A DNA stretch of 64,000 bases, from NCBI GenBank assembly GCA_965112735.1, contig OZ218953.1, forward strand, positions 620,001 through 684,000, read 5' to 3'. This document shows positions 13,505 through 60,931 of this stretch, in pieces. The notes under the pieces are model-generated. The model saw only the letters and a list, made by a program, of their open reading frames with translations, was not told where the DNA came from and did not search any database. The position numbers and the translations under genes are program-made. Source of the DNA: Phaeosaccion multiseriatum. Its lineage: Eukaryota > Protista > Ochrophyta, other classes. Position 1 is the stretch's first letter; every line of letters begins with the position of its first letter.

Positions 13505-13506
<2 letters not shown>

Positions 13507-13926: not shown

Positions 13927-13990
<64 letters not shown>

Positions 13991-14388: not shown

Positions 14389-14424
<36 letters not shown>

Positions 14425-15352: not shown

Positions 15353-15903
15353 CACGTTGCTCGATCCTGTGGCGTATGCGGTGTGTGAGCTGAGGCCGAG
15401 CCTCCTCTCCTCGCGACCCGTGAGTGGGGATCGTGAGTGGGGATCGATGCGGCATTCGACACCATTTACCATCATGCCAGCAGTCATGGGTCCGCGCAGC
15501 ACCACCTTACGAAGGAAGGGCCCCGTCTGCCAGCTTGCTTCTGGTGCACAGTCGCACAGCCTAGGCCGAGGGCAAGGAAGGTCGTGGCTGGGTACTCACA
15601 CAGATGAGGGCGTTAACCGACAGTCGAGGCGTAAAAAAAAAGAAGAAGAAAAAAAAGAGGTTTGTGAGGGCCCCGTCTATAAATACTACTGTATCTACTC
15701 TTGCATTCGTTGTGTGTACGTATGTGTGTGTATCCTACCGAGGGGAGGTGAATTTTCCCGGGGAGAGGGTATCCGTTAAAGGAAAAGAAGGATATGAGTG
15801 GTAAATAGAGAAGAGTAGTGCGTCGGCGGACGTACAGGACCTTCAGCAGCAGCAGAAGCAGCGGTAGCAGCAGCAGCAACAGCAGCAGCATCAGTCACTC
15901 AGA

Positions 15904-18900
15904 ATGAATGGCAGGAAGGATGAGATGGCAGACCTTCCAAGGCTGGTGATTAAACTCGGCAGTCAAGATTTGCTGGGGAGGGCGCACGAGGTTGTGGTCG
16001 AGCTCGGGGAGAAGCCCTTCGCCTTCTGGTACGATGGAAAGGGTAGAGAGGCGGAGCAGTACAGCTTCAGGCGCATGTGGGATGAGGTAAGAGGACGGGA
16101 GAGAAAGCCCGCCGCCAGCAGTGAGCCAGGCAGTGGCTGTACTCTAGGCGACATCACCCGAGGGGCGAGTGCAAACACCACGCAGTAGAGGGGGGGGGTG
16201 CCCTCCTTCTCGTCTTTCATCTATCTCTCTCCTCCTTCACTATACCCGCTCTCCTCGACTCGCACTATCGAACGCGGCCTTATGCCTGCTTCTCGCTCCT
16301 ACCCCTTCTTAGGCGGGCAAGATTGCCTACATGCTGCGGGGGGAGTGGGGTGTGCCCAAGGGAGCCATGGTGGTGCTGTGCTACGGGCCGGGCTTGCACT
16401 TCTTCGCTGCCTTCCTCGGCTGCTTCAGAGCGGGCGTGGTGGCGGTGATGGTGTACCCGCCCGCTCCTCCGCTGTCCAAGTCACTGCCCAAGATGAGCAA
16501 GATCGTTGCGGACTGTAAGCCCCTGCTGTGCCTCACTGACTCCACGATAGCAGCTGTGCGCAGAGTGGACAGAGCCAATCCACTCTCTGACTCGCGCAAG
16601 CTGTGGCCTGAGGACCTCGACTTTAAGGCTACGGATGGGGGGCTGCTTCCGAGCTTCTTCTCCTCCTCGTCAGACGCAGGGAGGAGCTTTGACGAGCCGA
16701 GCGTGGCCGAGGAGGACCTGGCGTTCCTGCAGTACACGAGCGGTTCTACCGGTGACCCCAAAGGCGTGATGGTGACCTTCGGTGCACTCATGGCCAACGT
16801 GTACCTCATCGGCTGCCACCCCGCTACGGGGATGTGCCGCATGTGGCCCTCGGACAAGGCTGGAGACTCCTCCTCAGACCAGCCGGAGGCGAGCAGCAGC
16901 GGTCCAGCCGAGAGGTCTGCACCAAGTGAGCGGCTGCACAACGTGCCAACGACAGGCTTCTCGTGGTTGCCCCAATATCATGTGAGTAATGTGAGCGAGC
17001 GAGGGAGTAGAGGATAGACAAGAGAGGAAGGGAGGCATATATGTGCGGCCCGCGGCCCGACACCCCTCTGCTCTGCTTTGCTTCTCGTCTTTGTCGCGCC
17101 CCACTTACTACCCTGCTGCCATTGACTAGTGAGTGGGCCTTTGTCTTGACGGCACCCACCTCGTTCTCCTTCTTGAGTAGGCCTGCCATGCATTGACCAT
17201 ACTCTCTCTGTGCTTCTCAGGACATGGGTCTCGTACTCGGCCTCCTCACCCCCTTCCTGACGGGCATGACAATGCACTACATGTCCCCCGTGACGTTCAT
17301 TAAGCGGCCCCTGCTCTGGCTGGAGCTCGTCTCTCGGCACCGCGTGGAGTGGTCCGTCGCCCCCGACTTCGCCTACGCTCTCTGCGCCCGCTACATGGCC
17401 AAGGTGCGCGGCACTCGTAAGGAGCCCAAGCTGGATCTGTCCTCCGTGGTCACGCTGACGTCGGGAGCTGAGCCCATTCGAACGGAGACGGTGGAGAGGT
17501 TCGAAGCGGCCTTCCTGCCTTTCGGTCTCCGGCAGGGGTGAGTGAGTGGGTGGTAGTCACTTTGACCTGCGCTTGAGCGCGAGAGATCTGTCACGGCATC
17601 CTCCCTGCTGCCCCCGTTTTTGGGCCGCTGAGTCCTTTCTAACCTTGTGCCACTCTCCCTTGTACGTACCTCTCTTTGACTTGTACACTGGCAGGTGGTT
17701 CTCGGCTGCGTACGGACTCGCTGAACACGTAGTGTCAGGTAAGAAGCCTTCACAGAAGGGGGGGCGGGTCGAGGAGGAGGGACAGGCGGTGGTGCATTTC
17801 CTTCTCTCCGGATAGGACTCGGCCCAAAGGCTCATACATTCGTCCTCTTGTCTTCCCACCGCTTTGCGTTCTTTCTCCAGTCTCCTGGGCCACTGTCCTC
17901 GATCGATCACCTTCTCGCCCCGACCTGACCAGCGTCGGTTCCCCGGGCGACAGGCTTGACTTTATGGACATTCGAATCGTCAATCCTGACACCAGGGTCG
18001 AGGTCAGCGAAGCAGCAGCCACGGGAGAGATTTGGATCTCCTCCCCCTCTGTCGCCGCCGGGTACTGGGGCAAGCCCGAGCTGTCCAAGGAGACGTTTGG
18101 TGCCACACTTGCACTCCCCAGAGGAGGAGCAGAGGGAAGCGATGACAGTGATGTCTCAAGTTGCAAGTACCTGCGGACGGGCGACGTGGGCTTTGTGGAG
18201 GAGGGGTTGCTGTACATCTGCGGTCGCATCAAGGACCTCATCATCTTCAACGGGGTCAACCACTACCCGCAGGACGTGGAGTTTGCTGTGCAAGAGGCCT
18301 CCAGTGCCGTTCGGCAGGGCTGCATTGCGGCCTTCTCCTCCGACGAGACGGGAGGGGACGGCGTACTGGAGGTGGTGTTCGAGATCCGGCAGGAGCGAGA
18401 GAGCGAGGCTCAGGCAGTGGTGGAGGCCGCTCAAGCCGCATTGTCGTCCTGTCTGGGCCTCCGAGCGGCCAGGGTGGTGGCCGTCAAGCAGAAGACCATC
18501 CCCAAGACCACGAGCGGTAAGATCCGACGGCGGGCGACAAGGCAGGCGCTTCACGCTGGCGAGCTGCACATGGTGCGCGAGCTCACCGAGGACACCGCGA
18601 GTGGGCAAGAAGGGAGGGCGGTTGCGATGTCACAGGTGTGAACGCGCGAGGGTGGAGGCCTCTTACCTATGTCATTCTTTCTTTACCTCTCTTTGTGGTC
18701 TGTCGTGCTTGCCCTTCGCAGACCTCTTGATCCTGCTCTGGTGCGGGGAAGCGTTGCTGAGGAAGTTGTTGTTGGTCTCACCCACCTGTTTTGCCCGTTT
18801 CCTCACACACACCGACAGGGCCCTCCTCTTGATGACCTTGCAAGCACGCGCTCAACTCCAGAGGACAGGCCTCGCTCCGTCGAAGGCGAGGTCCCGGAAA

Positions 18901-21256
18901 GAAGAGGAGAACGAGAGAGCAGTCTGGCCATTCATTCTATGGAGAGCCTCGGTAGGCAGGCAAGGGTGGCCATCATCTTGGAGGAGATCATAGGCTTTGC
19001 AGTGGAGGTGACGCACAATCGAGCTCTGACCGCCGATGACCGCTTCATGGAGGCGGGTATGACCTCGGTGATGATGGCGGAGCTGGCGGTGATGCTCGAG
19101 GACTTTCTGGGCAGCGAGAGAACGGAGGAGGAGGGGGACAAGGACTTTGAGCTTGGGGCCGAGGCCTTCTTCGACTATCCGACACCTGCTCTCTTGGCGG
19201 CTCACGTAGAGACGACCCTGTTTGGAGAGGGAGAGGGGGACGACGCTTCTGCTGACGGACTGCCTCCTCCTCTTCTTTCTGATAGTGGCAGCGACATTGC
19301 AGTCATTGGGATGGCCTGTCGCTTCCCCGGCGGATGCAACAGCCCGGAAGAGCTCTGGGCGAAGCTGTGCAATGAGGAAGACTGCGTCACCGATGCGCCC
19401 TCTGAGCGAGGCTTGGGAGCGGGAGTGAGAGGTACGCTATAAGTCTGCCTTGCTGCACACACATGATTGATTGCGGCATGCATCTCAGCCTGTGTAGCCT
19501 GTATTCTGCAGTGCTTCTTAGCACCCTCCTAAACATCTGCTCTTCCTCTCCCCTAATAATGCGATCAGGAGGCTTCATCGACACCGTGGAAGCGTTCGAC
19601 AACGCATTCTTTGGTATGTCCATCGCCGAGGCGGAGGCCCAGGACCCCAACCAGCGCATCATGCTCGAAGTGGCGTATGAGGCTCTGCATAGAGCCGGCT
19701 ACGAGGGCAGGCACAGGCTTGAAGGTCACCGAGTCGGCGTGTTTGTGGGCGCGGCAGGGAGTGACTGGTCCGCGGTGCTGCGTGATAGCGCGAGTGGTAG
19801 GTCTCCCAACGCGTACACCCTGGCAGGTGCAAGCCGGGCTTGCTTCGCGGGCCGTATTTCGCACACGCTGGGCCTTGTCGGGCCATGCGAAAGCGTAGAT
19901 GCAGCATGCTCATCGGCATTTGTGGCCCTGAACAACGCTTGCAACAGCCTAAGACTGAGGCAATGCAGCTCTGCCGTGGTTGGCGGGGTCAATCTGCTGC
20001 TCCACCACCAAGGCTTTGGCGGCCTGGCAAGTGCGGGGCTTCTGTCTAAAGAAGGGTGAGTAATTGCGCTTTTGCGACTCTCGCTCTTTGGAATGCGCTG
20101 TCTTCATGAAGTCGCCTTCGCTGACATTTGACGTTGTAGGAGTAAGTACTCGTCGTACGAAGAGGAGCCTCTCTGTGTTAGCTGGCTTGCCTGGAATCGA
20201 AGGTCTTGACCGGAGCTTTTGACTCACCTAACAAACGTGCCTCCACTCTTCCCCGGACTCCTCTCCTCCTGCTTCCACACCATGCCTGCCCTTCCATAGG
20301 CGCTGCAGGTCTTTTGACGTTCGTGGGGATGGATATGTGCGCAGCGAGGGCAGCGGGGCTGTCGTGCTGAAGCTCCTGTGCGAGGCCATCAAGGATGAAG
20401 ACAACGTCCTCGCCGTCATCAAGGCAGCGGCTGTCAACCACAGCGGCGTCAGCATTTCTCTGTCCGCCCCCAAGGGAGCCGCCCAAGAGAGATTGGCGAG
20501 GAGCGCCCTACGGCAGGCAGGGTACGAGGGGAGAGAAGTGAGCTACGTCGAGGCCCACGCCACGGGAACCGTCATGGGCGATGCCATCGAAATAGGTAGG
20601 TACAGATCGAGGAAAAGGGGGATGGAGTGATGTCGAAATAGGGCCCTTTTGTGTGTCGTGAGCTGGGCTGTTGCAAATGCTTTCACTGGGGAGGAGGGTG
20701 GCGAGAGATATCACACCAATCTCACGCATATTTTCCTCCTTTCCTTCCTTTCATTCTCCCCTCCTTCCTTCCTTCCTTCCTTCCTTCCTTCCTTCCTTCC
20801 TTCCTTCCTTCCTTCCTTCCTTCCTTCCTTCCTTCCTTCCTTCCTTCCTCCCTTCCTCCCTCCGCCCCCCCCCCCTTCCTCCTTCCATTCCCTTCCTTTC
20901 TTCCTTGCCCCTTTCCTTCCTTCCTTCCTCCCTTCCTCCCTCCCATCCTTCCGTTCCCTTCTTTCCTTCCTTCCTTCCTTCCTTCCTTCCTTCCTTCCTT
21001 CCTTCCTTCCTTCCTTCCTTCCTTCCTTCCTTCCTTCCTTCCTTCGTCCCTCCCTCCCTCCCTTCCTTCCTTCCTCCCTCCCTTCCTCCCTTCCTTCCTT
21101 CATTCATTCCTTCCTTCCCTCCTTCCTTCGTTCCTCCCTCCCACCATCCTTTCCTCCCTTCCTCCCTCCCTTCCTTCCTTTCATTCTTCCCTTCCTCCTT
21201 CCGTTCCCTTCCTCCCTCCCGTCCTTCCTTCTTTCTTCTTCCTTCCTTTCTTTCGT

Positions 21257-21326
<70 letters not shown>

Positions 21327-24300
21327 TTCCTTTCCTGTCTCCTTCCGTTCCCTTCCTCCCTCCCTTCCTTCATTCCTTCCGTCTTTCCTTCCTTCCTTCC
21401 TTCCTTCATTCCTGCCTCTCTTCCTTCCTTCCTTCCTTCCTTCCTTCCTTCCTTCCTTCCTTCCTTCCTTCCTTTCTATTTTCCCTTCCTCCTTCCGTTC
21501 CCTTCCTTCCCTCCTTCCTTCCTCCCTCCCTCCCTCCCTCCACTCCTTCCTTTCATTCTTCCCTTCCTCCTTCCGTTCCCTTCTTTCCTTAATTTCCATC
21601 CTTCGTTCCTTCTTTCCTCCCTCCCTCCCTCCCTCCCTCCCTCCCTCCCTCCCTTCCTTCCTTCTTTCTTTCCTTCCTCCCTTCCTCCCTTCCTCCCTTC
21701 CTTCCCTCCCTCCTTCCTTCGTTCCTCCCTCCCTCCCTCTCTCCCTTCCTTCCTTCCTTCCTTCCTTCCTTCCTTCCTTCCTGCCTTCCTTTCATTCTCA
21801 CCTTCCTCCTTCCGCCCCCCTCCTCCCTCCGTTCCTTCCTTCTTCCATTCTTCCTTTCTTTCTTTCGTTCTTTTCTTCCTTCCTTCCTTTCTTCCTTCCT
21901 TTCTTCGTCCTTCCTTCTTTCTTTCCTTCCGTTTCCCCTTCCGCCGCTCTCTTCCGTCACTCCTTTCCTTCAATCCCTTGTTTCGCTCCCACAGGCGCTC
22001 TCAAGGCGGCTTTCACCTCCAACAGGCCTGAGGCCTTCCCCCTTGTAGTGGGCACCGTCAAGACTTCCCTGGGCCACATGGAGGGGGCGTCGGGAATGGC
22101 TCAGCTCATCAAGGCCATCCTGGTACTGCAGCACCGAGAGGCCCCAGCCAACCTTCACCTCAAGGAGGTCAACCCCAAGCTTAAGCTGGAGGGCGTGCCC
22201 GTCACGCTGCCCACCCGAAGGACGCCACTTTCCTCCTACTGCTCCGACGGCTCGACGCTGCTCGCGGGTGTCAACTCCTACGGTGTTGGCGGAGTACACG
22301 CCCACGTCATCTTGGGCAGCTATGGCGACATGAGGCCCGAAGGCGCAGCAGAGGGGGCTGACACCCCTTGGCAGGGGTTTCCCTCGTCGCAGCGGTTCCC
22401 CCTCCCGAAGAGAGCCACACCAGCACACGATTGCGTGGGTCCTGCATCTGCTCCTCCCCCAGCGAGAGACGCCCTCTCACAGTTACGCGGGACTCTCTCT
22501 GTGCAGTCACCCGAGGATCGCCACGGGACTCTGTTGGAGCTCCTCAAGGCGGTTGTGCTCAAGTGTGTTGATGCAGACATGCCACCGCTGGACGACAATG
22601 TGCCCTTGATGGAGGCAGGCCTGGATTCGATGGCACTTGAGGAGGTGCGCAATCGCCTTCACACCGACTTGGGGGTGACAGTCACCACTGATGTGCTCTT
22701 TGAGCACCCAAGTATTGCGGCGCTCGCGGGCTGGCTGGATGGCGAGGTAATGGGAACAGGAGGCACCAGGGGCTTAGCGCGAGAGCTGAGCCCCACTTCA
22801 ACTTGGCCTCACTTGGCGGTGGTGGGCATGGCGTGCCGCTTTCCAGGAGGGGTGACTTCACCAGAGGGTTTCTGGAACATGCTTTGCACGGGATTGGACT
22901 GCATCTCTACGGCTCCAGCAGACAGGTGGGGAGGCGGCTCGAAGGAGTGGCGAGGAGGCTTCATAGAGGGCGTCCACCTCTTCGACAACACCTTCTTTGG
23001 CATTTCGTCAGCGGAAGCGCAGAGTATGGACCCCAACCAGCGCGTGCTGTTGGAGGTGGCGTTCGAGGCGCTGCACCGGGCAGGCTATGACAGGAGCAGT
23101 CTCCGCAAGAGCAAGACGGGGACCTTCATCGGGTGCGCTGGGAGCGATTGGCTGCAGGCTAGAGTGAACCAAGGAGCAGCCAGCGAAAGAGATGGCGTGT
23201 ACGCTGCGTCGGGGGCCTCCATGTCCAATTTGGCCAACCGAGTGTCTTACACGCTAGGGTTGAATGGGCCCAGCTCAACTGTGGACACGGCGTGCTCGTC
23301 CTCCCTAGTCGCCCTGGACAGTGCCAGCAACAGCCTCCGATTGGGCAAGTGTGACGCAGCTGTTGTCGGCGGAGTGAACCTCCTGCTGAGCGAGGCGCCT
23401 TTCAAGCTCCTTTCTTCAGGAGGGTTTCTGTCACTAGACGGGTAAGTAAGTGAATGAGTGAGTGAGTGAGTGAGTGAGTGAGTGAGTGAGTGAGGGGAGA
23501 GGAAGGGAGGGAAGGGAGGGAAGGGGGGAAGGCGGGAAGGAAGAAGGGAGTGAGTGAGTGAGCGGGGGAGGGAAGGAGGGAGAGGAAGAGGGACAAGGAG
23601 GGAGGGAGACGAAGAAAGAAAGTGAGGGAGTGAAGGAGCGGGAAGTAGGGAGGAAGGAAGGAAGGCAGAAGGGAAGGATGGAAGGAAGGAAGGAAGGAAG
23701 GAAGGAAGGAGGGAAGAAAGGCAGAAGGGAAGGAAGGAAGAAAGGAAGGAAGGAGTGAGGGAGTAAGCAAATGAGCATTGTGGCCCATCAGGTAGATATG
23801 TGTAGTGTCCACCTTGATTAGACCCACTGCTTCGTTCAGTACGGCAGAGTGAGAGCCTCAAATCTGCGCTTCTCCTCCAGTCTCCTTACCTAATTCTCCC
23901 CTGTTTGCCCCTTCCGCCCTCACTCCCCAGGCGCTGCAAAACATTCGACAAGTCGGCCAATGGCTACGTCAGAGGCGAGGGGTGCGGAGCAATCGTGCTG
24001 AAGCGTCTAGATGACGCCCTTGCCGACAACGATGAGGTGCTGGCTGTCCTGCGAGGCTCGGCTGTGAACCACAACGGGCCCAGCGTGCGGATGACGGCTC
24101 CGAACCCTGGTGCCCAAAAGGAGCTCATCGCAGACGCCTTGATCGACGCTGGGCTGTATCCGAACGACGTGAGTCTCATCGAGGCGCACGGCACAGGCAC
24201 GTCGCTCGGCGACCCCATCGAGATGAGCGCTCTCCGAGGAGTGTTTGCTCACGACCGCGATGAAGCAAAGCCTTTAATTGTAGGGGCGCTCAAGACAAAC

Positions 24301-27300
24301 ATTGGGCACTTGGAGGGTGCAGCAGGGATTGCCGGATTCATCAAAGCCGTGTTGATGGCGCAGCACAAGACCGCTCCACCAAATTTGCACCTCACGGAGC
24401 AGAATCCCGAACTTGACACCGAGGGGTTTGCAGTCGTACTCCCATCTTCCTTGACCCCCTTACCGACCAACTCCAACGGCTCTGTGGTGATCGGCGTCAG
24501 TTCCTTCGGATTCGGAGGTACCAATGCGCACGCAGTGCTCAGCAGCTACGAACCAAAGGCGGGTGAGGACGGCGGCGAGGGCTTGTTGCAGCAGCATGAG
24601 CACCAAAGCAACAAAATCGCTCCAGTGGCATTCTTGTTCACTGGTCAGGGGTCGCAGTACGTGGGCATGGGCAGGGAGCTGTACGAGAGGGAGGGCGTGT
24701 TCCGCGAGTGCGTGCAGCGGTGCAGCAGGCTGCTCATGGAGCGAGCTTGGCTGGACAAGTCTGTGGTGGAGCTCATGTACCCCGCGGTCGCTGAGGAGGA
24801 GGAGGAGGAAAGTGCACAAGCGCTGCTGAAGGAGACGCGTTACTGCCAGCCGTGTCTGTTTGTGCTGGAGTACGCCCTGTGCGAGCTGTGGAAATCGGAG
24901 GGCGTGGAGCCGTCGATGGTGATGGGCCACAGTCTGGGCGAGGTGGTGGCGGCGTGCGTGGCTGGCGTCATGTCGCTGGAGGACGGGCTGATGCTGTCCG
25001 CCAGGAGAGGAGCCATCATGCAGGCCTGCCCTGAGGGCGATGGAGTGATGTTCGCAGTGAAGGCAGGCCGCGTGGCCACCTTGGCAGGCATCGTGGCTGC
25101 GAGGCTGGCAGGCGAAGTGGTGCTGGCGTCGTCGAATGGACCGAGCGCGAGCGTGATCTCTGGAGCGCGCTGCGCTGTGGACAATGTGGTGGAGAAGCTC
25201 ACGGCAGATGGGGTGGGCTGCAAGGCCCTGGAGGTGTCGCACGCCTTCCACTCTCCTCTGATGGAGCCCGCTGTACGTGCACTGGAGGAGGTTCTGAGGC
25301 AGGTGTCATTCAGCGCCCCACGCATTCCCCTGGTGTCCAACGTGTCGGGTGAGGTGGTGAAAGCGGAGGAGATGACGCAGGCGACGTATTGGGTGCAACA
25401 CATGCTGTCGCCAGTACTGTTCGCAGAAGGCATCCACACGCTGGTGGGGCACTGGATGGGAGACGGGAGGGGGGCTAACCTGAGCATCGTTGAGGTGGGC
25501 CCCAACCCTGTGCTGAGCAGCATGGGAGCCAAGTGCGAGCGTCGCGAGGGGCTGGCGTGGATCTCTTCCCTCACGCGAGGGAAGAGCTCCGAGGATTCGT
25601 TTGGAGCTGCCCTGGGCAGAGTAGCAGGGCCGGAGCATCTTAAGCTGTATCCGACTCGCCGACCGTTTCCTTGGTACAAGCCTCCGCTGGCTTTTATGCC
25701 GAATGGTGAGATGGTCCAGGAGGGAGACGGAAAGAGGCTTGCAAGCCCTTTCTCCCCTCACCTCAAGGACCTTCTCAAGGACCATGCCGTCAACAATGTG
25801 GTGATCATTCCGGGGGTGACGTACATTGAAGTGGGCGTCGTCGCTGCTCTAGGAGGAAGACAGATCGGGGTAGAGCAGCAGGTAGTCCTGCAAGGAGCCA
25901 GCTTTGTGGTTCCACTGGAGATTGAGGGTTTCCAACAGGCCGGCACGGACCAAGTGCAAAGCCGCCATACAATGATCTGTGCCGGGATGAGCGCCCTTCA
26001 CGCGGCAGATGGATGCATGCAGTTCTTCGGAGGTGCCACGGGCGACAAGGGCACCACGGCAAGAATGAAGTACGTGTCTGTCATGGAGAGAAGCACGCCG
26101 CGTGCTTCGCTGCACGTGGAATCCATTCGAGCTAGAGTTGGCGAGCAGGACGTATCGAGTGAGCTCTACAAGCATTTCGCAGACGCCGGCTTCCAGTACG
26201 GCCCCCGCTTTCAGCGGACCCGCCACATGTACGGAGGGGACGGAGAGGTTCTGTCGGTCGTGTGTGCCATGGATGAGGAGCTGTGCGAACCGTGGGAAAT
26301 GAAGGGCTTTGCTCTGCACCCCGCGGTGCTGGACAATGCTACCCATTCCATTATGCAAGCGCTGCCAAGGAAGCTGCTCAAGGAGGGGGGGGGCTCTCCA
26401 TTCCTACCTGCTGGCTTTGACGAGGTGGTCGTTTCCGCCTCCATGACGGGAAAGAGCGTGTGGGTGCACACGAAGCTGAGTGAGGTCCAGTCAGTGGCGG
26501 ACAGCGTCAAGTTTGACATCCGCATTGCAGACTTCGACAGCAAGGAGGTGCTCGTGGAGATGCGGGGCTTCCGCGTGCAGCGGGCGAAGGGCTTTGTGCG
26601 TGTCAGCCCCGTTCGTCGTGCAGTGTACGCATTGGAGTGGCAGGCCGCTGAACCGTCTTCACAGGAGGAGGCCCCTAATAGTGATACTGACTCTACTGAG
26701 GCGGCGGCGCCACAGAAGTGGCTAGTGCTTATTCCACAGGATGAGGGGGGGGAGGGAGAGACTGCAGTCATTGCTGTGATACGGCGCTGTGTTCCGGAGA
26801 ACGTGGACGTGCACTCTCGATATGGGGGCATGGACGCCTCCTGGGATGATGGTGCTCTTCTTCTTGGAGAGGATGAGTGGGCTCGCGTCTTGTACGTGCT
26901 GATACCCCGAGCTGGCGAAGCAGGCGCAGAAGGGGGCCAGCAAGCACGAGCGGCCTACGCCCTGATGGCTCTACTCAGGAGCCTGTCCACTGCGTCGAGT
27001 GTGCCGCTGACGGTTTTGACGAGAGGCGTCCAAAGCGGCGAGGACTGGCGTCACAGCTGGGTCACAGGTCTGGTGCGGACTGCGAGGATGGAGTGCCCTT
27101 CCATGCGGATTGGTGTGGTGGACCTGAACGACAAGGAGTCCCTAGACAGCGAGCTTGCCTTAGGCTTGGCCTTCCCTCCTTCCACAGAAGATGTGTGGGT
27201 ACGGGATGAACAGTGCTGGACGCCTCAGCTTGCACACCCAGCTTTGACTCTTCCGTTTTCCCTGGAGCTTAAGGCAAGAGGTAGTATAGCCAATGCCTTT

Positions 27301-37200: not shown

Positions 37201-37221
37201 TTGGCCGAACCTTCCGTCGCC
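31369..37221 (+). repeat. Direct segmental duplication, copy 1 (~5.85 kb: ACP-T1, intergenic spacer, T2)
   Basis: Near-identical to 48848-54691 (offset about 17.47 kb). Many six-frame ORF translations of the two copies are identical, e.g. 34663..35811 and 52133..53281. Confidence 0.95.
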
Positions 37222-45800: not shown

Positions 45801-46500
45801 CAACCACTACCCGCAGGACGTGGAGTTCGCTGTGCAAGAGGCCTCCAGTGCCGTTCGGCAGGGCTGCATTGCGGCCTTCTCCTCCGACGAGACGGGAGGG
45901 GACGGCGTGCTGGAGGTGGTGTTCGAGATCCGGCAGGAGCGAGAGAGCGAGGCTCAGGCAGTGGTGGAGGCCGCCCAAGCCGCATTGTCGTCCTGTCTGG
46001 GCCTCCGTGCGGCCAGGATGGTGGCCGTCAAGCAGAAGACCATCCCCAAGACCACGAGCGGCAAGATCCGACGGCGGGCGACAAGGCAGGCGCTTCACGC
46101 TGGCGAGCTGCACATGGTGCGCGAGCTCACCGAGGACACCGCGAGTGGGCAAGAAGGGAGGGCGGCTGCGATGTCACAGGTGCGAACGCGCGAGAGTGGA
46201 GGCTTCTTGCTCATGCCATTCTTGCTTTGCCCTCTCTTTGTGGTCTGTCGTGTTTGCCCTTCGCAGACCTCTTGATCCTGCTCTGGTGCGGGGAAGCGTT
46301 GCTGAGGAAGTTGTTGTTGGTCTCACCCACCTGTTCTGCCCGCTTCCTCACACACACACACACACCGACAGGACCCTCCTCTTGATGACCTTGCAAGCAC
46401 GCGCCCGACTCCGGAGGACAGGCCTCGCTCCGTCGAAGGCGAGGTCCCGGAAAGAAGAGGAGAACGAGAGAGCAGTCTGGCCATTCATTCTATGGAGAGC
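39850..46500. repeat. Large inverted duplication: 5' halves of genes B and C, centred near 43.1 kb
   Basis: FAAL exons and introns of B (about 39850-42925) are near-identical reverse complements of those of C (about 43350-46500). Confidence 0.9.
42851..43438. promoter_or_regulatory. Putative bidirectional promoter between divergent genes B and C
   Basis: About 590 bp between head-to-head ATGs, with a T-rich core, a perfect 18-bp inverted repeat (42994-43011 / 43164-43181) and (CAG)n leaders on both sides. Confidence 0.6.
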
Positions 46501-49500: not shown

Positions 49501-51703
49501 CGGCTTTCTTACCCTCGGCACACCCGGCATCACTTTGTTCTACAAGCTGCTGGGTGCCGACGTCTCCTGGCGCTGCTCCATTTCCACCTTTCTCCGAGAG
49601 TTTGACCTCATCACGATTGGGGCCGGCGCTTCGGTGACTGGCTCGCTGTGTCCTCGCTCCTTCACGCCGTCAAGCATGGTCTTTCGCAGCATTGTTGTGG
49701 GTATGGGCGCAGAGGTGGAGGCGGGGGCTGTGGTGTACGGTGGGGTGAAGGTGGGCGAGGGCACACAGGTCGCTCGCCTGTCCGTTGTATACCCCCTGAC
49801 GCGCATTCCTGCTGGTGATGGCGTGTGGGAGGGCAACCCGGCGCAGAGGAAACAGAGCCGCCGCAGCGCCGAGGAGGGGGGTGGACGAGCTAGGATGACC
49901 GACAGAGAGAGACACTTGGCAAAGGGCAGTGACGGATGGGCGAATGAAGCCCTCCAACTCCTGCAAGGCGTGGTGCGTATGGTGCTAATTACGGCTTCTG
50001 TCATGCTCGCAGCCTTCTTTAGCTGGATGCCCGCCGTTGCGTACACCTTCATCGGTGTGTCAAGAGACTTTCGATACGCAGGAGTCATGAGCACGGTGTT
50101 TGGAGTGTATGGGGCTCTCCTGACTCTTGCCCTGTACCTGGTCCTGCTCAAGTGGGTCATTGCGCCGAGCTGCCTCCTTCGACCCGGCGTGTACACCGAC
50201 AACTTTGGAAGGGCGCTTCGTCGATGGTACCTCGGCAAGCTTCACAGCCAGGTGTCGGGCTACGTGCTCGTGTTCGCCCGCTGGCGCCTGTTCGACTGGT
50301 GGGGCAAGGCTCTGGGTGTGCGCATGGGAAGGGGGGCTATCAACTCGAGTGATGGCGCGTACAATCCCGAGACGGCCCACCTCATTACGTTTGGTAAGAA
50401 GGGAGGACAGGTCTAGCGGAGTGTATGTGGGAGGAGGGGGGATGCTTGGTACCAGCCGCGTTTTGCCACCATGGCTATTCGCCATGCTATGCGTTGCTTA
50501 GAGCGAAGGGCCTTTTTTCTCTCATCCCTTGTCTCTACTGAACGGTCTTTTACCACATACCCCAATAAATCCACAGGAGATGATGCTTTTGCTTCGTATG
50601 CCGCATTCACTACCGATGAACCGCTGGGGAGGGGCAGTGCCAACATTGGTAGTGCCACTGGAGGCAGCGCCGGGGGGGCAACACGTGTGCGAGGGACCTG
50701 CACCGTTGGGGACGGAGCGCTCCTCGGGTACATGTGCGTCATGGGGCCTGGTGCTGCCATTCCGGCACAGCAAGGCGTTGAAATGTTCACGGCTGTAGCA
50801 GCTGGGGACACAGTCGTGTCGACATCGTGGGGCCAGGGCGCAGTAGTGAAGGGAGGGAGGGAGGATGCCGCCTCATCTGCAGCGCTCTCGGGACCCGGCG
50901 CACTCACAAACGGAGACATCGAGCGTTGGGCCGCCTTTGTCGCCAGAGAGACATGGGGCACGCTGCTGTGGCTGGCGACCCATGTGGGGAGTCTGGTGGT
51001 GGTGGTGGAGGTGGGGAGGCACCTAAACCAAAGCGTGGGGAAGAAGCGCGGCATGAGCTTTGAGGCCATGCTGCCCCTGTACGGGGCCGTGTGCGGGTGT
51101 GCAGGAGCCCTTGCCCTCACTCTTCTCTTGGTGGCTTCCAAGTGGCTGCTCGTCGGTGACTTCAGCCGTGGTGCGGACCCAATCACGGGAGCGTGCATGT
51201 CCTCACAGAATGTTTCTCGGAGCGCGCGGACGCAGTACTTCCGCCTTCTGACCAGGATGCGTCTCTTCTTTCTGCTTTACATTCTGACGCCTTTATTCAG
51301 CGGTACATGGCTGTACAATCTGTACGTTCGAGCGTCGTGTGCGCGGCCCAAGGATATCTCGCTCGAGGCGTTGGTGTTGGGGGTGGATGTGTTCGACTTT
51401 GACTTTCTCACCTTGGAAGCAGGTGCCATACTTGACATGGGCAGTGAAGTCAAGGGTCACGTGCTTCGCCAAAGAGCTGCTGGTGCTGGGGGAGACGGCA
51501 CTACCGGGCTGCTGGTCATGTCCCCCTGTAGAGTGAAGGCAGGGGCAGTCCTTCACCCCTACGCCTTTGTCACCCACGGCACCGTCGGCAGTCGGGCCGA
51601 GCTCTTCGCCTACAGTCCGCCGCTCATGGGGCAGGGGCTGCGCGATGGAGGCAAGTACGGTGGCCGCGGAGTGCCAGGATTGCTCAAGAGCAAGCTATCG
51701 TGA
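43439..51703 (+). CDS. Gene C: FAAL(b)-ACP-KS(y)-ACP-Pls/PosA-like terminal domain (type T1); AT-less, about 2218 aa
   Basis: Exons 43439-43576, 43868-44551, 44740-45056, 45259-45302, 45425-46179, 46372-46984, 47125-47611, 47738-48033, 48198-50393, 50577-51703 (6657 nt, in frame). KS DTACSS/HATGT/GHMEG; ACP GMDS. Confidence 0.88.
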
Positions 51704-54691
51704 GACTGCTGGAGCGAGGGCTCGACTATTGTATCGCTCAATTTGTATGTAGTACAGCTCTTAGTTCAAGGTTTGCAAGGGAGGGCCCTTCCATATCATG
51801 AAAATAGTCAAGAGACTCGGTCGGAGGAAGAGAGGGAGGGAAGGAAGTAAAGCAGTGTATTATGTACTTAATAGCCCGTAGAGGAGCGTCGGGTGTCTCT
51901 CCAGACAACACATCAGTCCTCAAGACGCAAATGTCGCGAGGCATCTCCCCCTAACAACAAGAGACAGCCAAATACCCACAGGCTCTTGAGAATACTTTAC
52001 TCTTTCTACTACGCCTCGACTGTCAGTAAACGCCCTCATCTGTGTGAGTACACAAGGCCTTCATCTCTCTCTCTCTCTCCCTGGGCTGTGCACAAGGAGG
52101 TGCCGCAAAGAGTCACCGTGTGTCGTTGATGGTTGTGCTGCAGCACGCACGGCACTCAGAGGAGTCCTGCTCGCTGTAGCAGGGGGCACACGCCTCCTTC
52201 GCCTGAAACCTTCTCCCAGTCAGCACAACTCTGCTCTTCCTCTCAGACCACGCGGGCGCTGCTTCGCGCTCCCAGTGTCAGCTCGTACCCCTTCGCTCCC
52301 ATCTTGCTCACATCCAGTGTCGCGCCCTCACCCAGCACGAAGCCGGGAAGGGTCAGCGAGCGAGCGTTCAGCCTCGCCCCCTTGCCGACGCGCACGCTCT
52401 CAACATACATTACCCCACCGTGCTCCAGAATGTGGCACTGGGGCATGGCGTGCCTCTCCACCACAACGTCATCCTCCAGGGTGAGCAGGTCGGGGTCTGG
52501 AACGAAACGGCAGTCAATGTGCACATTCGATCCGGCTCTCAGTCCCAGCAGGCGCAGATACCACGGAAGGAGGGGTGAGCCCGCGAGCAGCTCGACGACA
52601 GTTCCCATGGCGAGAGTCTGGCAGGCTGTGGCAGAGGTCCAGCGAACGTACTCCAAAGACGATCGTGTAAAGGAGTGCGCCTTCCTCCGGGTGGGCATCA
52701 CGGCCCACTTCAGTGCAGCAGAAGTCACCGCCACCAGCGCGAGGAACAAGAGCAACCACAGCGGTAGCGTCACGAGGATGCTCTTGTCACCCAGCTGCAG
52801 CACGACTTTACTGATGGCGAGACTCACTAACGCTGCCAACGTGTACAGATGGAGAGCAAGTACACACGGCTGCAGCACCGGCATGAGCAGCATGGCGAAT
52901 ACCTGCAATGCACTGAGCTTCTCCGTCGACGCGCTGCCGGTTGCAATTTGCAGCAAAGGGCTGCCTCCAATCTGCCCCACCGCCGTACTGGCCAGACTCG
53001 TTTGCAGCCTGCGGTCGCTCATGCTTCGTCGGGGTTCGTCCACTCTGACGGGTTGCCCGCCAGGAGCATTCACCCTGGAAATGATATCCACGGGAGGGGG
53101 CAGGGAAGACACCCCTCCCTGTCCTCCGAGGCAGGTGGACCGTGCTTGGAGCTCGTCGCTCTCTCGCACAACACTCAAAGCTCCAACCTCACAGTCCGCT
53201 GGAATGCTCGCGCCGGGCAGCGCCACGCAGAAGGCTCCGAGTAGCGCGTTGTCACCGATTCGCACTGTGCCCGTTACGTAGCGTTGCCTGCCTTTCGCGT
53301 CGACCTTAAACATGCCCGTGATGGGGGCGGACGGAATGCCTAGATGAGACTGCGTCCCGACGGAGAGCAACTCCGGCTCGTACGGGTACTCTGCGAAACT
53401 CGTCACACCCAGGCCAAAGCGAGCCCCCATGCTGGCCAGCCAAGCGTTCTCTGCCTGTGTCGCTACTGTGAAGGGCATCACCGTGCGAGACGTAAATGCC
53501 ATCAGGTCGGCCACCAAAGCCCTACGAAGAGCCTCGAATGAGGAGACTGGCGTCGTTCGGGGCTTGCGCGGTAGCAACATGGCCCACTTGATGAGAGCCA
53601 CAATGGTGCACATTGCAGCTGTGTACACCACCCACGTCAGTGCTCCAGGCCACAGCGCCCCAAACAAGTAGTGTTGCTTCAGCACCCGCATCAGGACGAG
53701 GTTCACAAGGCCCCGGTTGATGCCCGGGAAGACGGCGAAGAAGGGGATAGACAGCGGGCCCGCCAGATTCCATGCCATCAACAGAGCGAGTGTCGCTGAA
53801 GAGCCTTCTAGACCAGATGCGAAACCCAGTGCTCTCGTTTCGTCTGTGGGGTAGATGCCGCCAACGCTCAGAAGCTTGAAGAGGGCCCTCGAGGCAATGA
53901 AGGTCCCCACTGCCACCACAAGCACCACGAAGTACAGCCTCAGGACAGTCCATAGGATGTCCTCCACCGCAGATGAAGTACGTGCCGACAGTGACGCTTC
54001 ATTCACACCCATTCCGCCCTTCGGGCGGCCCCGTACTTCTGCGAGCGCTCCCGCTGCGTGCTCGCTTGGTAACCTTCCTCCCTGATTCACTACCACCCAC
54101 GGCTCCACACTGCAGCGGGCATCGACAGAAGCTGTGCCAAAGGAGACGTCTCTGATGCCCACAATGTGCGTTCTGAAGATCACTCCCTTGTTCACCACAG
54201 AGTTGTCGCCGATTACTACCCACTCTGGGTCGTACAGCTCCGTGGTGTCCAAAATCACGTTGCAACCAATCGTGGCTCCCAGGGCCCGGTAGTACAACAC
54301 CAGCAGAGGGGAGCGACGCAGGAGGAAGCTGTGGTTACTGGCAGTCCAGCCCATGAGCCGCTGCATCGTCCACCAAGCGATGAACTGAGCAGAGCGCCTC
54401 TGAATCTTATCCGCTGTACATCCAGCCCTCACTGGTGGCACAAGGAGGCGCTTCGAGAGGATGACAACTGCCATCTGGAGGAGGAGGTAGGTGAGCCATC
54501 CAGCCGGTACTACGACCCCTCCAGCGAATAGCAGCGACCGGTCCTGTGCGTACTTGAACACACATCTGACGAAGCCGTACATGGGTAGGAGGATTGCCCA
54601 GGACAGGTAGGCGAAAGCACATACCCACAGCAGCGCCAGGAGCCACTGGGGAGCGTCTTGGACTCGATCCTTGGCCGAACCTTCCGTCGCC
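48848..54691 (+). repeat. Direct segmental duplication, copy 2
   Basis: Near-identical to 31369-37221. Confidence 0.95.
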
Positions 54692-57600
54692 ACTGCCGCG
54701 CGTCCGCGTTGGCCAGCCTCAGGGCTGCTGCTACCAAGCGAAGTAGTACGATTACTACTTGTACCAACGCCCCGACCACCCCGGCCCCTGCCGCCTTCCT
54801 TCTCCTCTCCTTCTTCGCTCACGGTAGCAGGAGGAGTCGCCACGCGGGAGCACAAGTGGGAGAATAACCTCGAGAAAGACGGATGAGAATATATGTCCGT
54901 TGGTCTGACGGCCGCGTCGAGCTGCAAAGCCTTGGTGAGCTGGGCACACAAGCCCACAGTTGAAAGGGAACCTGACAGCCTGTCCAGGAGAAGCTCCTTA
55001 CTCGAGCGTAGCTCTTCCAAAGTGGGCGGGAACGTCCAGTCGTCCTCCTTTCCTGCTGCCATTCTGTTGTACACGTCCGTGAATACACGAAAGATGTGCT
55101 CCTCCCTCGCCTGCACGCGAAAGCGTTGCTGCCAAGCGAGCTCGCCAGGCCCTACAGAGCCTGCTGGGGAAGGTGGGCTAAAGGTGTCTCCGAACTTTTT
55201 GACCCAGTCCTTGGCAGGCAGGAGGGCCACGTCAGCCAAAGGAGCAGGCCGCATCGCAGCGGCATCAGAGAGGACGTCTCCCGCTGGGGGAGGAGGAGAT
55301 GTAGGACCCTTGCCATCATGTGTTGGTGCTGCTCTCTGCGGGAGGGGAAACTCTCGCGACGAGGGGAACCCTTGCCAAGGGGTATCACCTCGCTCTGCTG
55401 CGCCTTCGGGCCTCATGTCGCCATAGCTGCCCAAGATGACGTGGGCGTTTACTCCGCCAACCCCGTAGGAGTTGACACCTGCGAGCAGCGTTGAGCCGTC
55501 GGAGCAACAGGAGGAAAGGGGCGTCCTTCGGGTGGGCAGCGTGACGGGCACGCCCTCCAGCTTAAGCTTGGGGTTGACCTCCTCCTGGTGAAGGTTGGCT
55601 GGGGCCTCTCGGTGCTGCAGTACCAGGATGGCCTTGATGAGCTGAGCCATTCCCGACGCCCCCTCCATGTGGCCCAGGGTAGTCTTGACGGTGCCCACTA
55701 CAAGGGGGGAGGCCTCAGGCCTGTTGGAGGTGAAAACGGCCTTGAGAGCGCCTAAGATGCATCACACGATGGTAAGGGGGGAGGGAGGGAGGACATGAAT
55801 GAGCCTTGGTTTAACCTCTCTCAACGCCATCTCACATTCTTCGAGCTCACAAGAGAGAGAGTTTACGATGCCTCTTGTTGCCACCTCTCCGCCCTTTGCG
55901 GCCTTCACAACTTACCCATTTCGATGGAGTCACCAATAACGGTTCCTGTGGCGTGGGCTTCAACGTAGCTCACTTCTCTCCCCTCGCACCCTGCCTGCCG
56001 TAGTGCCCTTCTCACTAAGCTCTCCTGGGCGGTTCCCTTGGGGGCGGATAGAGAACTGCTGACGCCGCTGTGGCTGACAGCCGCTGCCTTGATGACGGCG
56101 AGGATGCGGTCCCCGTCCTTGATGGCCTCAGGCAGGAGCTTCAGCACGACGGCCCCGCTGCCCTCGCTGCGCACATATCCATCCCCACGAGCGTCAAAGG
56201 ACTTGCAACATCTGAAGTACGAGAGGGGACATAGCAAGGAGAGGTGTGTGCTCAATGACTGTTTCTCCCGTGTCTCTCCCGACTTTCTCTCGAAACCGTA
56301 AGCCAACCCAAAGGCGCCCCATTAAAAACACACTCACCCTTCTTTAGATAGAAGCCGCGCATCGGCCAGGCCGCCAAAGGCTTGGTGGTGGAGCAGCAGG
56401 TTCACACCGCCAACGATCGCAGAGCGGCTCTCCCTGAGTCTCAGGCTTTTGCACGCGTTGTTCAGAGCCACTATTGCCGACGAGCATGCTGTATCTACGC
56501 TTTCGCATGGACCTTCAAGGCCGAGTGTGTGCGAGATGCGGGTAGCGATGCAAGCTCGGCTTGCCCCCGCCAGCACGTACGGGTTTCCCTTGGTGAGTTG
56601 TGGGTTCTCGTAGAGAAGAGTAGGCCAGTCACTCCCTGCCACGCCCACAAACACGCCGACTCGGTGCCCTTCAAGCCTGTGCCTGCCCTCGTAGCCGGCT
56701 CTATGCAGAGCCTCATACGCCACTTCGAGCATGATGCGCTGGTTGGGGTCTTGGGCCTCCGCCTCGGGGATGGACATACCGAAGAATGCGTTGTCGAACG
56801 CTTCCACGGTGTCGATGAAGCCTCCTGATCGCATAATTAGGGGAGAGGAAGAGCAGATGTTTAGGAGGGTGCTAAGAAGTACTGCAGAATACAGGCTACT
56901 CAGGTTGAGCTGCATGCCGCAATCAATCATGTGTGTGCAGCAAGGCAGACTTATAGCGTACCTCTCACTCCCGCTCCCAAGCCTCGCTCAGAGGGCGCAT
57001 CGGTGACACAGTCTTCCTCATTGCACAGCTTCGCCCAGAGCTCTTCCGGGCTGTTGCAGCCAGCGGGGAAGCGACAGGCCATCCCAATGACTGCAATGTC
57101 GCTGCCACTATCAGAAAGAAGAGAAGGAGGCAGTCCGTCAGCAGAAGCGTCGTCCCCCTCTCCCTCTCCAAACAGGGTCGTCTCTACGTGAGCCGCCAAG
57201 AGAGCAGGTGTCGGATAGTCGAAGAAGGCCTCGGCCCCAAGCTCAAAGTCCTTGTCCCCCTCCTCCTCCGTTCTCTCGCTGCCCAGAAAGTTCTCGAGCA
57301 TCACCGCCAGCTCCGCCATCATCACCGAGGTCATGCCCGCCTCCATGAAGCGGTCGTCGGCGGTCAGAGCTCGATTGTGCGTCACCTCCACTGCAAAGCC
57401 TATGATCTCCTCCAAGATGATGGCCACCCTTGCCTGCCTACCGAGGCTCTCCATAGAATGAATGGCCAGACTGCTCTCTCGTTCTCCTCTTCTTTCCGGG
57501 ACCTCGCCTTCGACGGAGCGAGGCCTGTCCTCCGGAGTCGGGCGCGTGCTTGCAAGGTCATCAAGAGGAGGGTCCTGTCGGTGTGTGTGGGTGAGGAAAC

Positions 57601-60545
57601 GGGCAAAACAGGTGGGCGAGACCAAAAACAACTTCCTCAGCAGACGCGTTCCCGCACCAGAGCAGGATGAAGAGGTTATTCGCACCTGTGACATCGCAAC
57701 CGCCCTCCCTCCCTGCCCACTCGCGGTGTCCTCGGTGAGCTCGCGCACCATGTGCAGCTCGCCAGCGTGAAGCGCCTGCCTTGTCGCCCGCCGTCGGATC
57801 TTGCCGCTCGTGGTCTTGGGGATGGTCTTCTGCTTGACGGCCACCACCCTGGCCGCTCGGAGGCCCAGACAGGACGACAATGCGGCTTGGGCGGCCTCCA
57901 CCACTGCCTGAGCCTCGCTCTCTCGCTCCTGCCGGATCTCGAACACCACCTCCAGTACGCCGTCCCCTCCCGTCTCGTCGGAGGAGAAGGCCGCAATGCA
58001 GCCCTGCCGAACGGCACTGGAGGCCTCTTGCACAGCAAACTCCACGTCCTGCGGGTAGTGGTTGACCCCGTTGAAGATGATGAGGTCCTTGATGCGGCCG
58101 CAGATGTACAGCAACCCCTCCTCCACAAAGCCCACGTCGCCCGTCCGCAGGTACTTGTGACTTGAGACATCACTGTCATCGCTTCCCTCTGCTCCTCCTT
58201 TGGGGAGTGCGAGTGTGGCACCAAACGTCTCCTTGGACAGCTCGGGCTTGCCCCAGTACCCGGCGGCGACAGAGGGGGAGGAGATCCAAATCTCTCCCGT
58301 GGCTGCTGCTTCGCTGACCTCGACCCTGGTGTCAAGATTGACGATTCGAATGTCCATAAAGTCAAGTCTGTCGCCCGGGGAGCCGACGCTGGTGAGGTCG
58401 GTGCGAGAAGGTGATCGATCGAGGACAGTGGCCCAGGAGACTGGAGAAAGAACGCAAAGCGGTGGGAAGACAAGAGGACGAATGTATGAGCCTTTGGGCC
58501 GAGTCCTATCCGGAGAGAAGGAAATGCACCACCGCCTGTCCCTCCTCCTCGACCCGCCCCCCCTTCTGTGAAGGCTTCTTACCTGACACCACGTGTTCAG
58601 CGAGTCCGTACGCAGCCGAGAACCACCTGCCAGTGTACAAGTCAAAGAGAGGTACGTACAAGGGAGAGTGGCACAAGGTTAGAAAGGACTCAGCGGCCCA
58701 AAAACGGGGGCAGCAGGGAGGATGCCGTGACAGATCTCTCGCGCTCAAGCGCAGGTCAAAGTGACTACCACCCACTCACTCACCCCTGCCGGAGACCGAA
58801 AGGCAGGAAGGCCGCTTCGAACCTCTCCACCGTCTCCGTTCGAATGGGCTCAGCTCCCGACGTCAGCGTGACCACGGAGGACAGATCCAGCTTGGGCTCC
58901 TTGCGAGTGCCGCGCACCTTGGCCATGTAGCGGGCGCAGAGAGCGTAGGCGAAGTCGGGGGCGACGGACCACTCCACGCGGTGCCGAGAGACGAGCTCCA
59001 GCCAGAGCAGGGGCCGCTTAATGAACGTCACGGGGGACATGTAGTGCATTGTCATGCCCGTCAGGAAGGGGGTGAGGAGGCCGAGTACGAGACCCATGTC
59101 CTGAGAAGCACAGAGAGAGTATGGTCAATGGCAGGCCTACTCAAGAAGGAGAACGAGGGGGGGGGGGTTAAGACAAAAGGCCCACTCACAAGTCGATGGC
59201 AGCAGGGTAGTGAGTGGGGCGCGAGGGAGCAACAGCAAAGACGAGCGAGAAGCAAAGCAGAGCAGAGGGGTGTGGCTGGCCGCACATTATTGCCTCCCTT
59301 CCTCACGCTTGGGGCTTCATTCCTTGTCATCTGTTTCCCTGTTTCTCCTCCCCTCTATCCTCTACTCTCGACCCTGGACAAGATTACAGTGTGCGCCGGC
59401 CGTAATCAGTAATCAGCCCCCGGCTGGCGCATAACCAGTAATCAGGCCGGCTGGTCACCGCTGTTTCTCTCTCTAACTCACATGATATTGGGGCAACCAC
59501 GAGAAGCCCGTCGTTGGCACGTGGTGCAGCCGCTGACTTGGCGCAGGCCTCTCGCCTGGACCGCTGCTGCTCGCCTCGGGCTGGTCTGAGGAGGAGTCTC
59601 CAGCCTTGTCCGAGGGCCACATGCGGCACATCCCCGTGGCAGGGTGGCAGCCGATGAGGTACACGTTGGCCATGAGTGCACCGAAGGTCACCATGACGCC
59701 TTTGGGGTCGCCGGTAGAACCACTCGTGTACTGCAGGAACGCCAGGTCCTCCTCGGTCACGCTCGGCTCGTCAAAGCTCCTCAATGCGTCTGACGAGGAG
59801 GAGGAGGAGAAGAAGCTCGGAAGCAGCCCCCCATCCGTAGCCTTAAAGTCGAGGTCCTCAGGCCACAGCTTGCGCGAGTCAGAGAGTGGATTGGCTCTGT
59901 CCACTCTACGCACAGCTGCTATCGTGGTGTCGGTGAGGCACAGCAGGGGCTTACAGTCCACCACTATCTTGCTCATCTTGGGCAGTGACTTGGACAACGG
60001 AGGAGCGGGCGGGTACACCATCACCGCCACCACGCCCGCTCTCAGGCAGCCCAGGAAGGCCGCGAAGAAGTGCATGCCCGGCCCGTAGCACAGTACCACC
60101 ATGGCTCCCTTGGGCACACCCCACTCCTCCCGCAGCATGTAGGCAATCTTGCCCGCCTAAGAAGAAGGGGCAGGAGAAGCTTAGCTAAGCAAGGCCGCGT
60201 GAGATAGAGTCGTGGAGAGCGGGGGAGTGAAGGAGGAGAGAAGAAAGACGAGGAGGAGGTCACCCCCCCCCTCTACTACGTAGTGTTTGCACTCGCCCCT
60301 CGAGTGATGTCGTCTAGGGACACATCGGTGGCGGCGGGCTTTCTCTTCCCTCTTACCTCAGCCCACGTGCGCCTGAAGCTGTACTGCTCCGCCAGTCTAC
60401 CCTTTCCATCGTACCAGAAGGCGAAGGGCTTCTCCACGAGCTCGGCCACAACCTCGTGCGCTCTCCCTAGCAAACTTTGTTGCCCTGCCCTTTCTTGCCT
60501 GCCGGGTCCCCGCAGCCTTGGAAAGTCTGGAGGCTCGTCCATCAT
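52243..60545 (-). CDS. Gene D: FAAL(a)-ACP-KS(y)-degenerate ACP-Pls/PosA-like terminal domain (type T2); AT-less, about 2294 aa
   Basis: Exons 60545-60357, 60156-59482, 59100-58784, 58626-58583, 58440-57686, 57574-56962, 56824-56338, 56211-55916, 55751-52243 (6885 nt, in frame). Exon lengths 317/44/487/296 are shared with A, B and C. Confidence 0.88.
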
Positions 60546-60555
60546 ACCATTCCGG

Positions 60556-60577
60556 CTGCTGCAGGCTGCTGCTGCTG

Positions 60578-60635
<58 letters not shown>

Positions 60636-60654
60636 CTGCTGCTGCTGCTGCTGC
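60556..60654. repeat. (CTG)n / (CAG)n microsatellite upstream of gene D
   Basis: Directly visible. Confidence 0.9.
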
Positions 60655-60931
60655 GAGATGGCCTTTGTTTGAGCAGCTGCATCCGGCGACGTGCTTCTCT
60701 TCTATTCGTTCGAAAGAAATCCGACGGTGGGGGCGGAACATGCGGATGTAACGGGCAAACAAGACACTATCAAACGTCAGATGCTTCCTACAACTACAAC
60801 ATGTGTGATGGGTACGAGTACTTTTTATCTTTCTTATGAGGAGGGGACACTGCTGGGGTGAAGGAGGTCCAATGCCGCCATCGCTTCCCCCAGCTAAGAG
60901 GAGGAAGAAGAGGCCCAACTCCCCCCCCCCC

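Follow-up and report, generated by a model that had tools for sequence, protein, structure and literature searches.

Between 15.9 and 60.5 kb of a 64,000-nucleotide stretch of the Phaeosaccion multiseriatum genome (GenBank contig OZ218953.1, positions 620,001 to 684,000; the whole stretch is called the window, and coordinates are counted from its first letter) lie four paralogous, intron-bearing megasynthase genes whose segments are related to one another in mutually incompatible ways. The genes alternate in strand, in the order A (15904..34218, +), B (34773..42850, −), C (43439..51703, +) and D (52243..60545, −), and the window has a G+C content of ~60%. As an original prediction, made from the letters of the window, had proposed for nested inverted repeats, recombination at the DNA level, between nested inverted and also direct repeats, has re-associated their starter (fatty acyl-AMP ligase-like, FAAL), ketosynthase (KS) core and terminal segments. 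The history that we favour, with a probability of about three in four, is that four old clustered paralogues were homogenised piecewise by repeated, tract-limited, non-reciprocal recombination, that is, by gene conversion.

Results

The heads of the four genes (A 15700-22700; B 37350-43150, reversed; C 43200-48750; D 55050-60750, reversed) were aligned and every variable column was classified. Block I, comprising the promoter-proximal region and the FAAL (A 15850..18200, +; B 42915-40561; C 43358-45744; D 60613-58121), groups A with D and B with C (AD|BC) at 422 informative sites, compared with 2 for AB|CD and 3 for AC|BD; identity is 93.6% for AD, 95.4% for BC and ~74-75% for the remaining pairs. 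Block II contains the C-terminal part of the FAAL, a linker, the acyl carrier protein (ACP) domain and the start of the KS (A 18201..19640, +; B 40560-39140; C 45745-47196; D 58120-56753). Here no topology is resolved, and B stands apart from the other three genes: A, C and D are mutually 96-98% identical and ~92% identical to B, which has 75 singletons (A 4, C 19, D 18). Block III is the KS core with the active-site Cys and one intron (A 19641..20600, +; B 39139-38180; C 47197-48038; D 56752-55911), and all 155 of its informative sites support AB|CD, with 0 and 0 for the other groupings; AB are 96.7% identical, CD 98.6%, and the two types ~79%. Block IV, the C-terminal subdomain of the KS (A 21993..22330, +; B 38055-37718; C 48196-48539; D 55753-55416), returns to the arrangement of block II, again without a resolved topology, A, C and D being mutually 94-96% identical and 85-86% identical to B (singletons: B 35, A 3, C 7, D 4). 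The tails group AC|BD, with 31369-37221 matching 48848-54691 in direct orientation.

Both alternative trees were rejected by the approximately unbiased (AU) test in block I (delta lnL 1098) and in block III (delta lnL 494). The best single breakpoint between the head and the KS core falls between A 19523 and 19612 (Fisher p = 5e-139). Different segments thus support mutually exclusive trees with sharp breakpoints, the pattern by which segmental conversion is recognised. A single consistent gene topology, the outcome that the original prediction had named as speaking against a mosaic, was not obtained, the head giving AD|BC, the KS core AB|CD and the tails AC|BD. The diagnostic motifs of that prediction were all found in the genes and at the places given: those of FAAL type a in A (16811, 17452) and D (59652, 58869), those of type b in B (41885, 41322) and C (44414, 44974), DAACSS and WSAVLRDSASG of KS type x in A (19898, 19766) and B (38882, 39014), and DTACSS and WPTLLYENPQLTKG of type y in C and D. 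Two of its statements hold in part. That each pair of genes shares exactly one module is true of the pairs that include B but not of A, C and D, which have blocks II and IV in common as well, at 94-98%. The x/y distinction does separate AB from CD, but in the KS core and not across the whole KS. Since the difference is limited to the core, A's own KS is chimeric.

Introns follow the same pattern, as predicted. The intron of A at 20056-20299 is 95.9% identical to B 38481-38724 and 36.5% identical to the 126-bp intron of C, the intron of C at 48034-48197 is 97.0% identical to D 55752-55915, and the FAAL intron of A at 17538-17932 is 99.2% identical to its counterpart in D and 54% to that in C. 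Overall, intron identity is 96-99% within a type and 36-57% across types, and intron lengths follow the type of the surrounding exons, the block III intron measuring 244 bp in A and B and 126 bp in C and D. Synonymous divergence (dS) is 0.01-0.15 within types; between types it is 0.38-0.72 for a and b (type-specific exons), 0.27-0.42 for x and y, and 0.40-0.50 for B versus A, C and D in block IV. Since introns and synonymous sites follow the blocks, the blocks reflect exchange of DNA, and convergence as their source is ruled out. Positive selection on the type-specific segments was also considered and is unsupported, omega between types being 0.3-0.6.

The tail block consists of two direct copies (self-BLASTN). 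Copy 1 (31369..37221) runs from an ACP and the T1 tail of gene A through the 3′ intergenic spacer to the T2 tail of gene B, and copy 2 (48848..54691) carries the corresponding parts of C and D. Over 5.86 kb the copies are 98% identical, unevenly so: the T1 part is at ~97%, with more diverged patches, whereas T2 and part of the spacer are at ~100%. A base-identical run of 2,686 bp (34498..37184, −, equal to 51968-54654) takes in almost all of the T2 coding sequence in B and D and reflects either a very recent conversion or an effect of polishing. Within the T1 tails, patches of 88-91% identity (A 32368-32468 and 33868-34062; C 49847-49947 and 51347-51541) are set in sequence of 96-100% identity. 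At both edges of the block identity falls sharply, on the A/C side to ~74% and on the B/D side to 74-85%. These old flanks imply that the two T1/T2 tail units, and so probably both gene pairs, long predate the shared blocks. A 98-100% block with sharp edges and old flanks does not fit the tandem duplication of a convergent pair in the original prediction, taken as one recent event.

Two features point to transfer in one direction. The types are unequally represented in blocks II and IV, where three genes stand against one, and A carries an internal patch of B-like sequence between stretches of its own type. Shared segments presuppose copying, by duplication or by non-reciprocal transfer, whereas reciprocal inversions do no more than bring existing segments into new combinations. 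Because such inversions keep the types at 2:2, the 3:1 blocks and the reversion of A to its own type after the patch argue for gene conversion without crossover. Of the two processes offered in the original prediction, gene conversion therefore stands, while inversions alone do not suffice. The 3′ edge of the patch in A falls inside an intron (20596-21994) that is swollen by a (TTCC)n microsatellite of ~298 units (20733..21930, +; TRF, alignment and skew scan) and whose counterpart measures 130-164 bp in B, C and D; at each end the patch stops within or close to an intron.

Gene conversion could have produced the present arrangement as follows. The four genes would be old paralogues, oriented +,−,+,−, of a FAAL-ACP-KS-ACP megasynthase with a Pls-type membrane terminus. 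Two old head/KS lineages, ~dS 0.4 apart, would have existed among them, as fits the similar between-type dS across the type-specific blocks. One, beta, would read b-II′-x-IV′, since B has b and x and differs from the other three in blocks II and IV; the other, alpha, would read a-II-y-IV, the combination that D carries. B would then be pure beta, and D pure alpha in its head and KS. A would be alpha with a ~1-kb beta patch on its KS core, donated by its convergent neighbour B, and C would be alpha with a head overwritten by the adjacent, divergent B up to ~18.2-18.5 kb (in A coordinates). Conversion would thus have worked between inverted as well as direct copies. T1 and T2 would represent two very old Pls-type termini, the tail units having been homogenised late and T2 last. 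If three genes with an alpha backbone each have a segment in common with B, and a different one in each case (the KS core, the head and the T2 tail), the ‘Latin square’ of modules described in the original prediction follows automatically. The details of this alpha/beta scheme, as distinct from the process itself, are evenly balanced between right and wrong.

Self-BLASTN confirmed the predicted nested repeats: A/D as outer inverted copies, B/C as inner inverted copies around a spacer of ~0.5 kb, and A/B and C/D as further inverted pairs. The head-to-head spacer between B and C (42851..43438, no strand; self-BLASTN, alignment and gene models) is the centre of the inner repeat. The A/B repeat (2.7 kb, 91% identity, core 96.7%) lies either side of ~18 kb and the C/D repeat (2.3 kb, 96%, core 98.6%) either side of ~8 kb. 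Both are long, near-identical inverted repeats around a unique segment, an arrangement prone to non-allelic homologous recombination. A history along the lines of the original prediction would have a convergent pair (a/x/T1 and b/y/T2) duplicated, in tandem or inverted, with inversions between the nested repeats then re-assorting heads, KS and tails and perhaps still doing so. Inverted repeats of 0.9-4.2 kb and 90-100% identity do flank both tail units and the B-C spacer. One duplication and two reciprocal exchanges give the four combinations on paper, and flipping either interior would create the four missing ones. Reciprocal exchange, however, keeps the types at 2:2, and blocks II and IV are 3:1; the return of A to the A/C/D type downstream of the x patch marks a conversion patch rather than a crossover; the 15-26% divergence of the tail-block flanks makes the duplication of the pair much older than the shared blocks; and no recombinase-like domain was found among the ten flanking open reading frames (ORFs) scanned. 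We consider this history unlikely.

A palindromic duplication about 43.15 kb, with D derived from A, C from B and one inversion at the C/D KS repeats swapping the tails, seems less likely still. It would account for heads that group AD|BC as far as their promoter regions, with similarity ending at 15844/60616 on the outside and at 42874/43415 on the inside, and for the tail unit being the sole directly oriented element. Under it, blocks II and IV should likewise give AD|BC, where C instead groups with A and D, and so should x and y, where AB|CD is observed; at least three further conversions would be needed, and the tail flanks are old. Neither a purely reciprocal history nor a palindrome followed by a flip is sufficient alone, given the 3:1 blocks. 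The edges of the polyketide synthase (PKS) repeats, outer as well as inner, are marked by simple repeats rich in purines (13905-14014, 15844-15894, 42871-42932 and 60550-60654).

Homologous recombination between such long inverted repeats could also lead to inversions, and nothing shows this happening at the locus; that recombination between the inverted KS repeats flips the tail units often enough to be measured is very doubtful. The idea of a shufflon-like generator still at work fared no better, as the ten flanking ORFs of at least 200 aa hold no recombinase-like domain (no search for short crossover sites was made). More broadly, Pfam scans of the PKS ORFs and of these flanking ORFs identified no integrase, recombinase or transposase, although spliced or small genes could escape such scans.

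Sequencing runs were consulted as Logan k-mer contigs, which break at repeats; three runs (X1, X2 and X4) come from one sample, perhaps that of the assembly itself, and a fourth (X5) from another. Contigs of X1, X2 and X4 behave like DNA and together cover the whole of the 5.9-kb stretch examined, and the junction at 48848, the left edge of the second tail-block copy, is bridged without mismatches by contigs of X2 and X4. That chimeric joins, retained haplotigs or homogenising polishing made part of the mosaic, especially the 2,686-bp T2 identity, is the least probable of these explanations: a perfect 2.7 kb beside flanks of 74-85% is unusual, the DNA runs share one sample and their contigs do not link the blocks, but the blocks differ by 1-6% within and 20-50% between types with type-specific intron lengths, unlike collapsed or palindromic artefacts, the unique 48848 junction is spanned by error-free contigs, and the reading frames are open in all four genes. 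It is unlikely that the entire mosaic stems from an assembly artefact.

The X5 contigs skip three GT..AG introns in C (44552-44739, 45057-45258 and 45303-45427) and look like RNA from spliced transcripts, which suggests that a b-type FAAL gene is expressed in the second sample. Some of their b-type FAAL variants (44300-45631) are those of B, among them a 3-nt deletion at 44484, and others occur in neither B nor C. Since the contigs fully match neither gene, they would derive from another allele or strain, and the cluster would thus differ from strain to strain.

Gene structures were modelled with a simple ab initio GT-AG finder trained on long exons and are approximate. Uninterrupted models without internal stops were obtained for A (~4,860 aa), B (~2,160 aa), C (~2,180 aa) and D (~2,290 aa). 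Architectures were assigned from Pfam matches (on ORF pieces), TIGR02353 matches in the tails and the GT-AG models, with the alignment in addition for B and D and RNA-like contigs for C. Pfam gave FAAL-ACP-KS-ACP-KS-AT-DH-ER-KR-ACP-KS-ACP and a terminus for A, and FAAL-ACP-KS and a terminus for B, C and D. In A the FAAL is of type a, the first KS has an alpha start, an x core and an alpha C-terminus, and the tail is T1. B reads FAAL(b)-ACP-KS(x)-ACP-like-T2 and is the outlier (‘beta’) in every head/KS block, C reads FAAL(b)-ACP-KS(y)-ACP-T1, and D reads FAAL(a)-ACP-KS(y)-ACP-like-T2 and is ‘alpha’ throughout its head and KS. ACP-like DSL motifs 3′ of the KS were also present in B and C by local model alignment, the model of D being unreliable there. 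All four local models carry the DxACSS, EAHATGT and GHMEG motifs, which hold the Cys-His-His residues of the KS. From their AMP-binding (FAAL-like), PP-binding and ketoacyl-synt matches, A to D would fit FAAL-primed type I PKSs.

The two extra modules of A (~9 kb) form an insert, ACP-KS-AT-DH-ER-KR-ACP-KS plus linker, at 22331..31368 (+) that is absent from C (Pfam; BLASTN/TBLASTX); the 318-bp linker of C at 48530-48848 is collinear with the linker after the third KS of A, at ~74% nucleotide identity. AT (24620-25620), DH, ER and KR domains occur in A and in none of the other three genes, which read FAAL-ACP-KS-ACP-terminus. Since B, C and D are without an AT, their extender units would be loaded in trans, or their KS may not perform standard elongation. 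The intron of A that follows the (TTCC)n intron (23445-23754) contains complementary purine-rich (GGAA/GAGG)-like repeats on the same strand, and the two tracts form an inverted pair of extreme skew around exon 21995-23441, precisely at the point beyond which A is no longer like C and D.

The T1 terminus shared by A and C and the T2 terminus shared by B and D are both putative Pls/PosA-type domains with hexapeptide-repeat units. Their scores against TIGR02353 (NCBIfam), 162.9 bits for T2 and 74.9 + 18 bits for T1, are all far below the cut-off of 423.1. By BLASTP they are 25-32% identical to a Pls/PosA protein, and the search with T2 matched only bacterial Pls/PosA proteins. T1 and T2 are distant relatives of each other, with ~25-40% identity in patches only.

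A metagenome scan with the KS exon returned only distant relatives (38-53% identity), none of them from a related strain. In one of these, a 25-kb contig, the exon is matched at 53% identity by 617 nt (8001-8617) for 156 residues; an intron probably lies within the match, whose source may be a related gene of a eukaryote. Upstream of gene A, a 615-aa ORF (13505-15349, +) encodes four WRKY19-type zinc fingers and has internal tandem repeats (13681-14497); its best relative, and sole hit, is a protein of the diatom Skeletonema dohrnii (46% identity). An ORF fragment at 12753-13385 (−) matches the kinesin motor domain (E = 4.5e-10) and is part of a neighbouring spliced gene. A short-period, trinucleotide-phased repeat recurs at 999-1371, 9412-9487 and 61000-61633 with 84-97% identity, and is probably a low-complexity coding or satellite motif.

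Discussion

Several points weigh against piecewise gene conversion as reconstructed here. The role of B as donor rests on parsimony among four sequences with no outgroup, and other paralogues in the genome are possible donors. The older layer of the history, with its two T1/T2 tail units and their 15-26% diverged flanks, is a sketch, and crossovers or inversions may have helped to form the y block or the arrangement of the genes. The perfect T2 identity over 2.7 kb could in part be an effect of assembly or polishing. The gene models are approximate, a 44-bp microexon shown by the RNA-like contigs having been skipped by the finder.

Homologous recombination and gene conversion are established drivers of bacterial PKS diversification (Jenke-Kodama et al. 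2006, PMC1592344; Nivina et al. 2021, PMC8256042), although exchange of KS domains between pathways was described as never seen (Jenke-Kodama et al. 2006, PMC1592344). As in the bacterial assembly lines, paralogous PKS segments have been exchanged or homogenised here, with breakpoints both inside domains and in linkers, a natural ‘biocombinatorics’. The present locus differs in being eukaryotic, with spliced genes whose introns were carried along, and in that exchange took place among four separate genes, in nested inverted and direct arrangement, rather than among the modules of one cluster; the parts exchanged are the FAAL, the KS core and the Pls-type terminus. GRINS-type skewed coding repeats are absent from it: in 150-bp windows the GC and TA skews both exceeded 0.35 only in the intronic (TTCC)n/(GGAA)-like microsatellites and in the isolated interval 59101-59251.

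Arm-to-arm gene conversion is well known from palindromes and inverted repeats such as those of the primate Y chromosome. There, as here, inverted paralogous arms are 96-100% identical in tracts through non-reciprocal transfer, and the repeats can also mediate inversions; in the present locus homogenisation is instead confined to blocks whose partners differ from block to block, leaving a mosaic rather than uniform arms. Shufflons are site-specific invertible cassettes, for example that of R64 with Rci and its sfx sites. The likeness to them lies in inverted repeats flanking segments whose inversion would alter the C-terminal part of a protein, whereas the homologies here are kilobases long, the host is eukaryotic and no recombinase was found in the ORFs scanned. 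The termini resemble the membrane-embedded terminal domain, with its hexapeptide-repeat units, of Pls/PosA synthetases (the epsilon-poly-L-lysine synthetase type), again below the cut-off, but would be fused to FAAL-ACP-KS-ACP instead of an A-T didomain. No paper on FAAL-PKS-Pls fusions in algae was found in the literature searched.

The locus adds an unusually tidy case to those known of this process, one that is eukaryotic, spread over four genes and with three re-assorted segments that include the KS core. It shows, cleanly and with unambiguous statistics, that domains of megasynthase genes have been re-assorted naturally in a eukaryote, a chimeric KS core included, and it is a well-resolved instance of block-wise concerted evolution in nested inverted repeats. 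Were the tail units to flip after all, a population or culture would carry all eight combinations of FAAL, KS and terminus, making this a recombination-driven locus of combinatorial biosynthesis in a eukaryote. As they stand, the four enzymes form a natural half-factorial set of two starter domains, two KS cores and two membrane termini, which could tie differences in product to single segments of this uncharacterised FAAL-PKS-Pls class and show which junctions nature tolerates.

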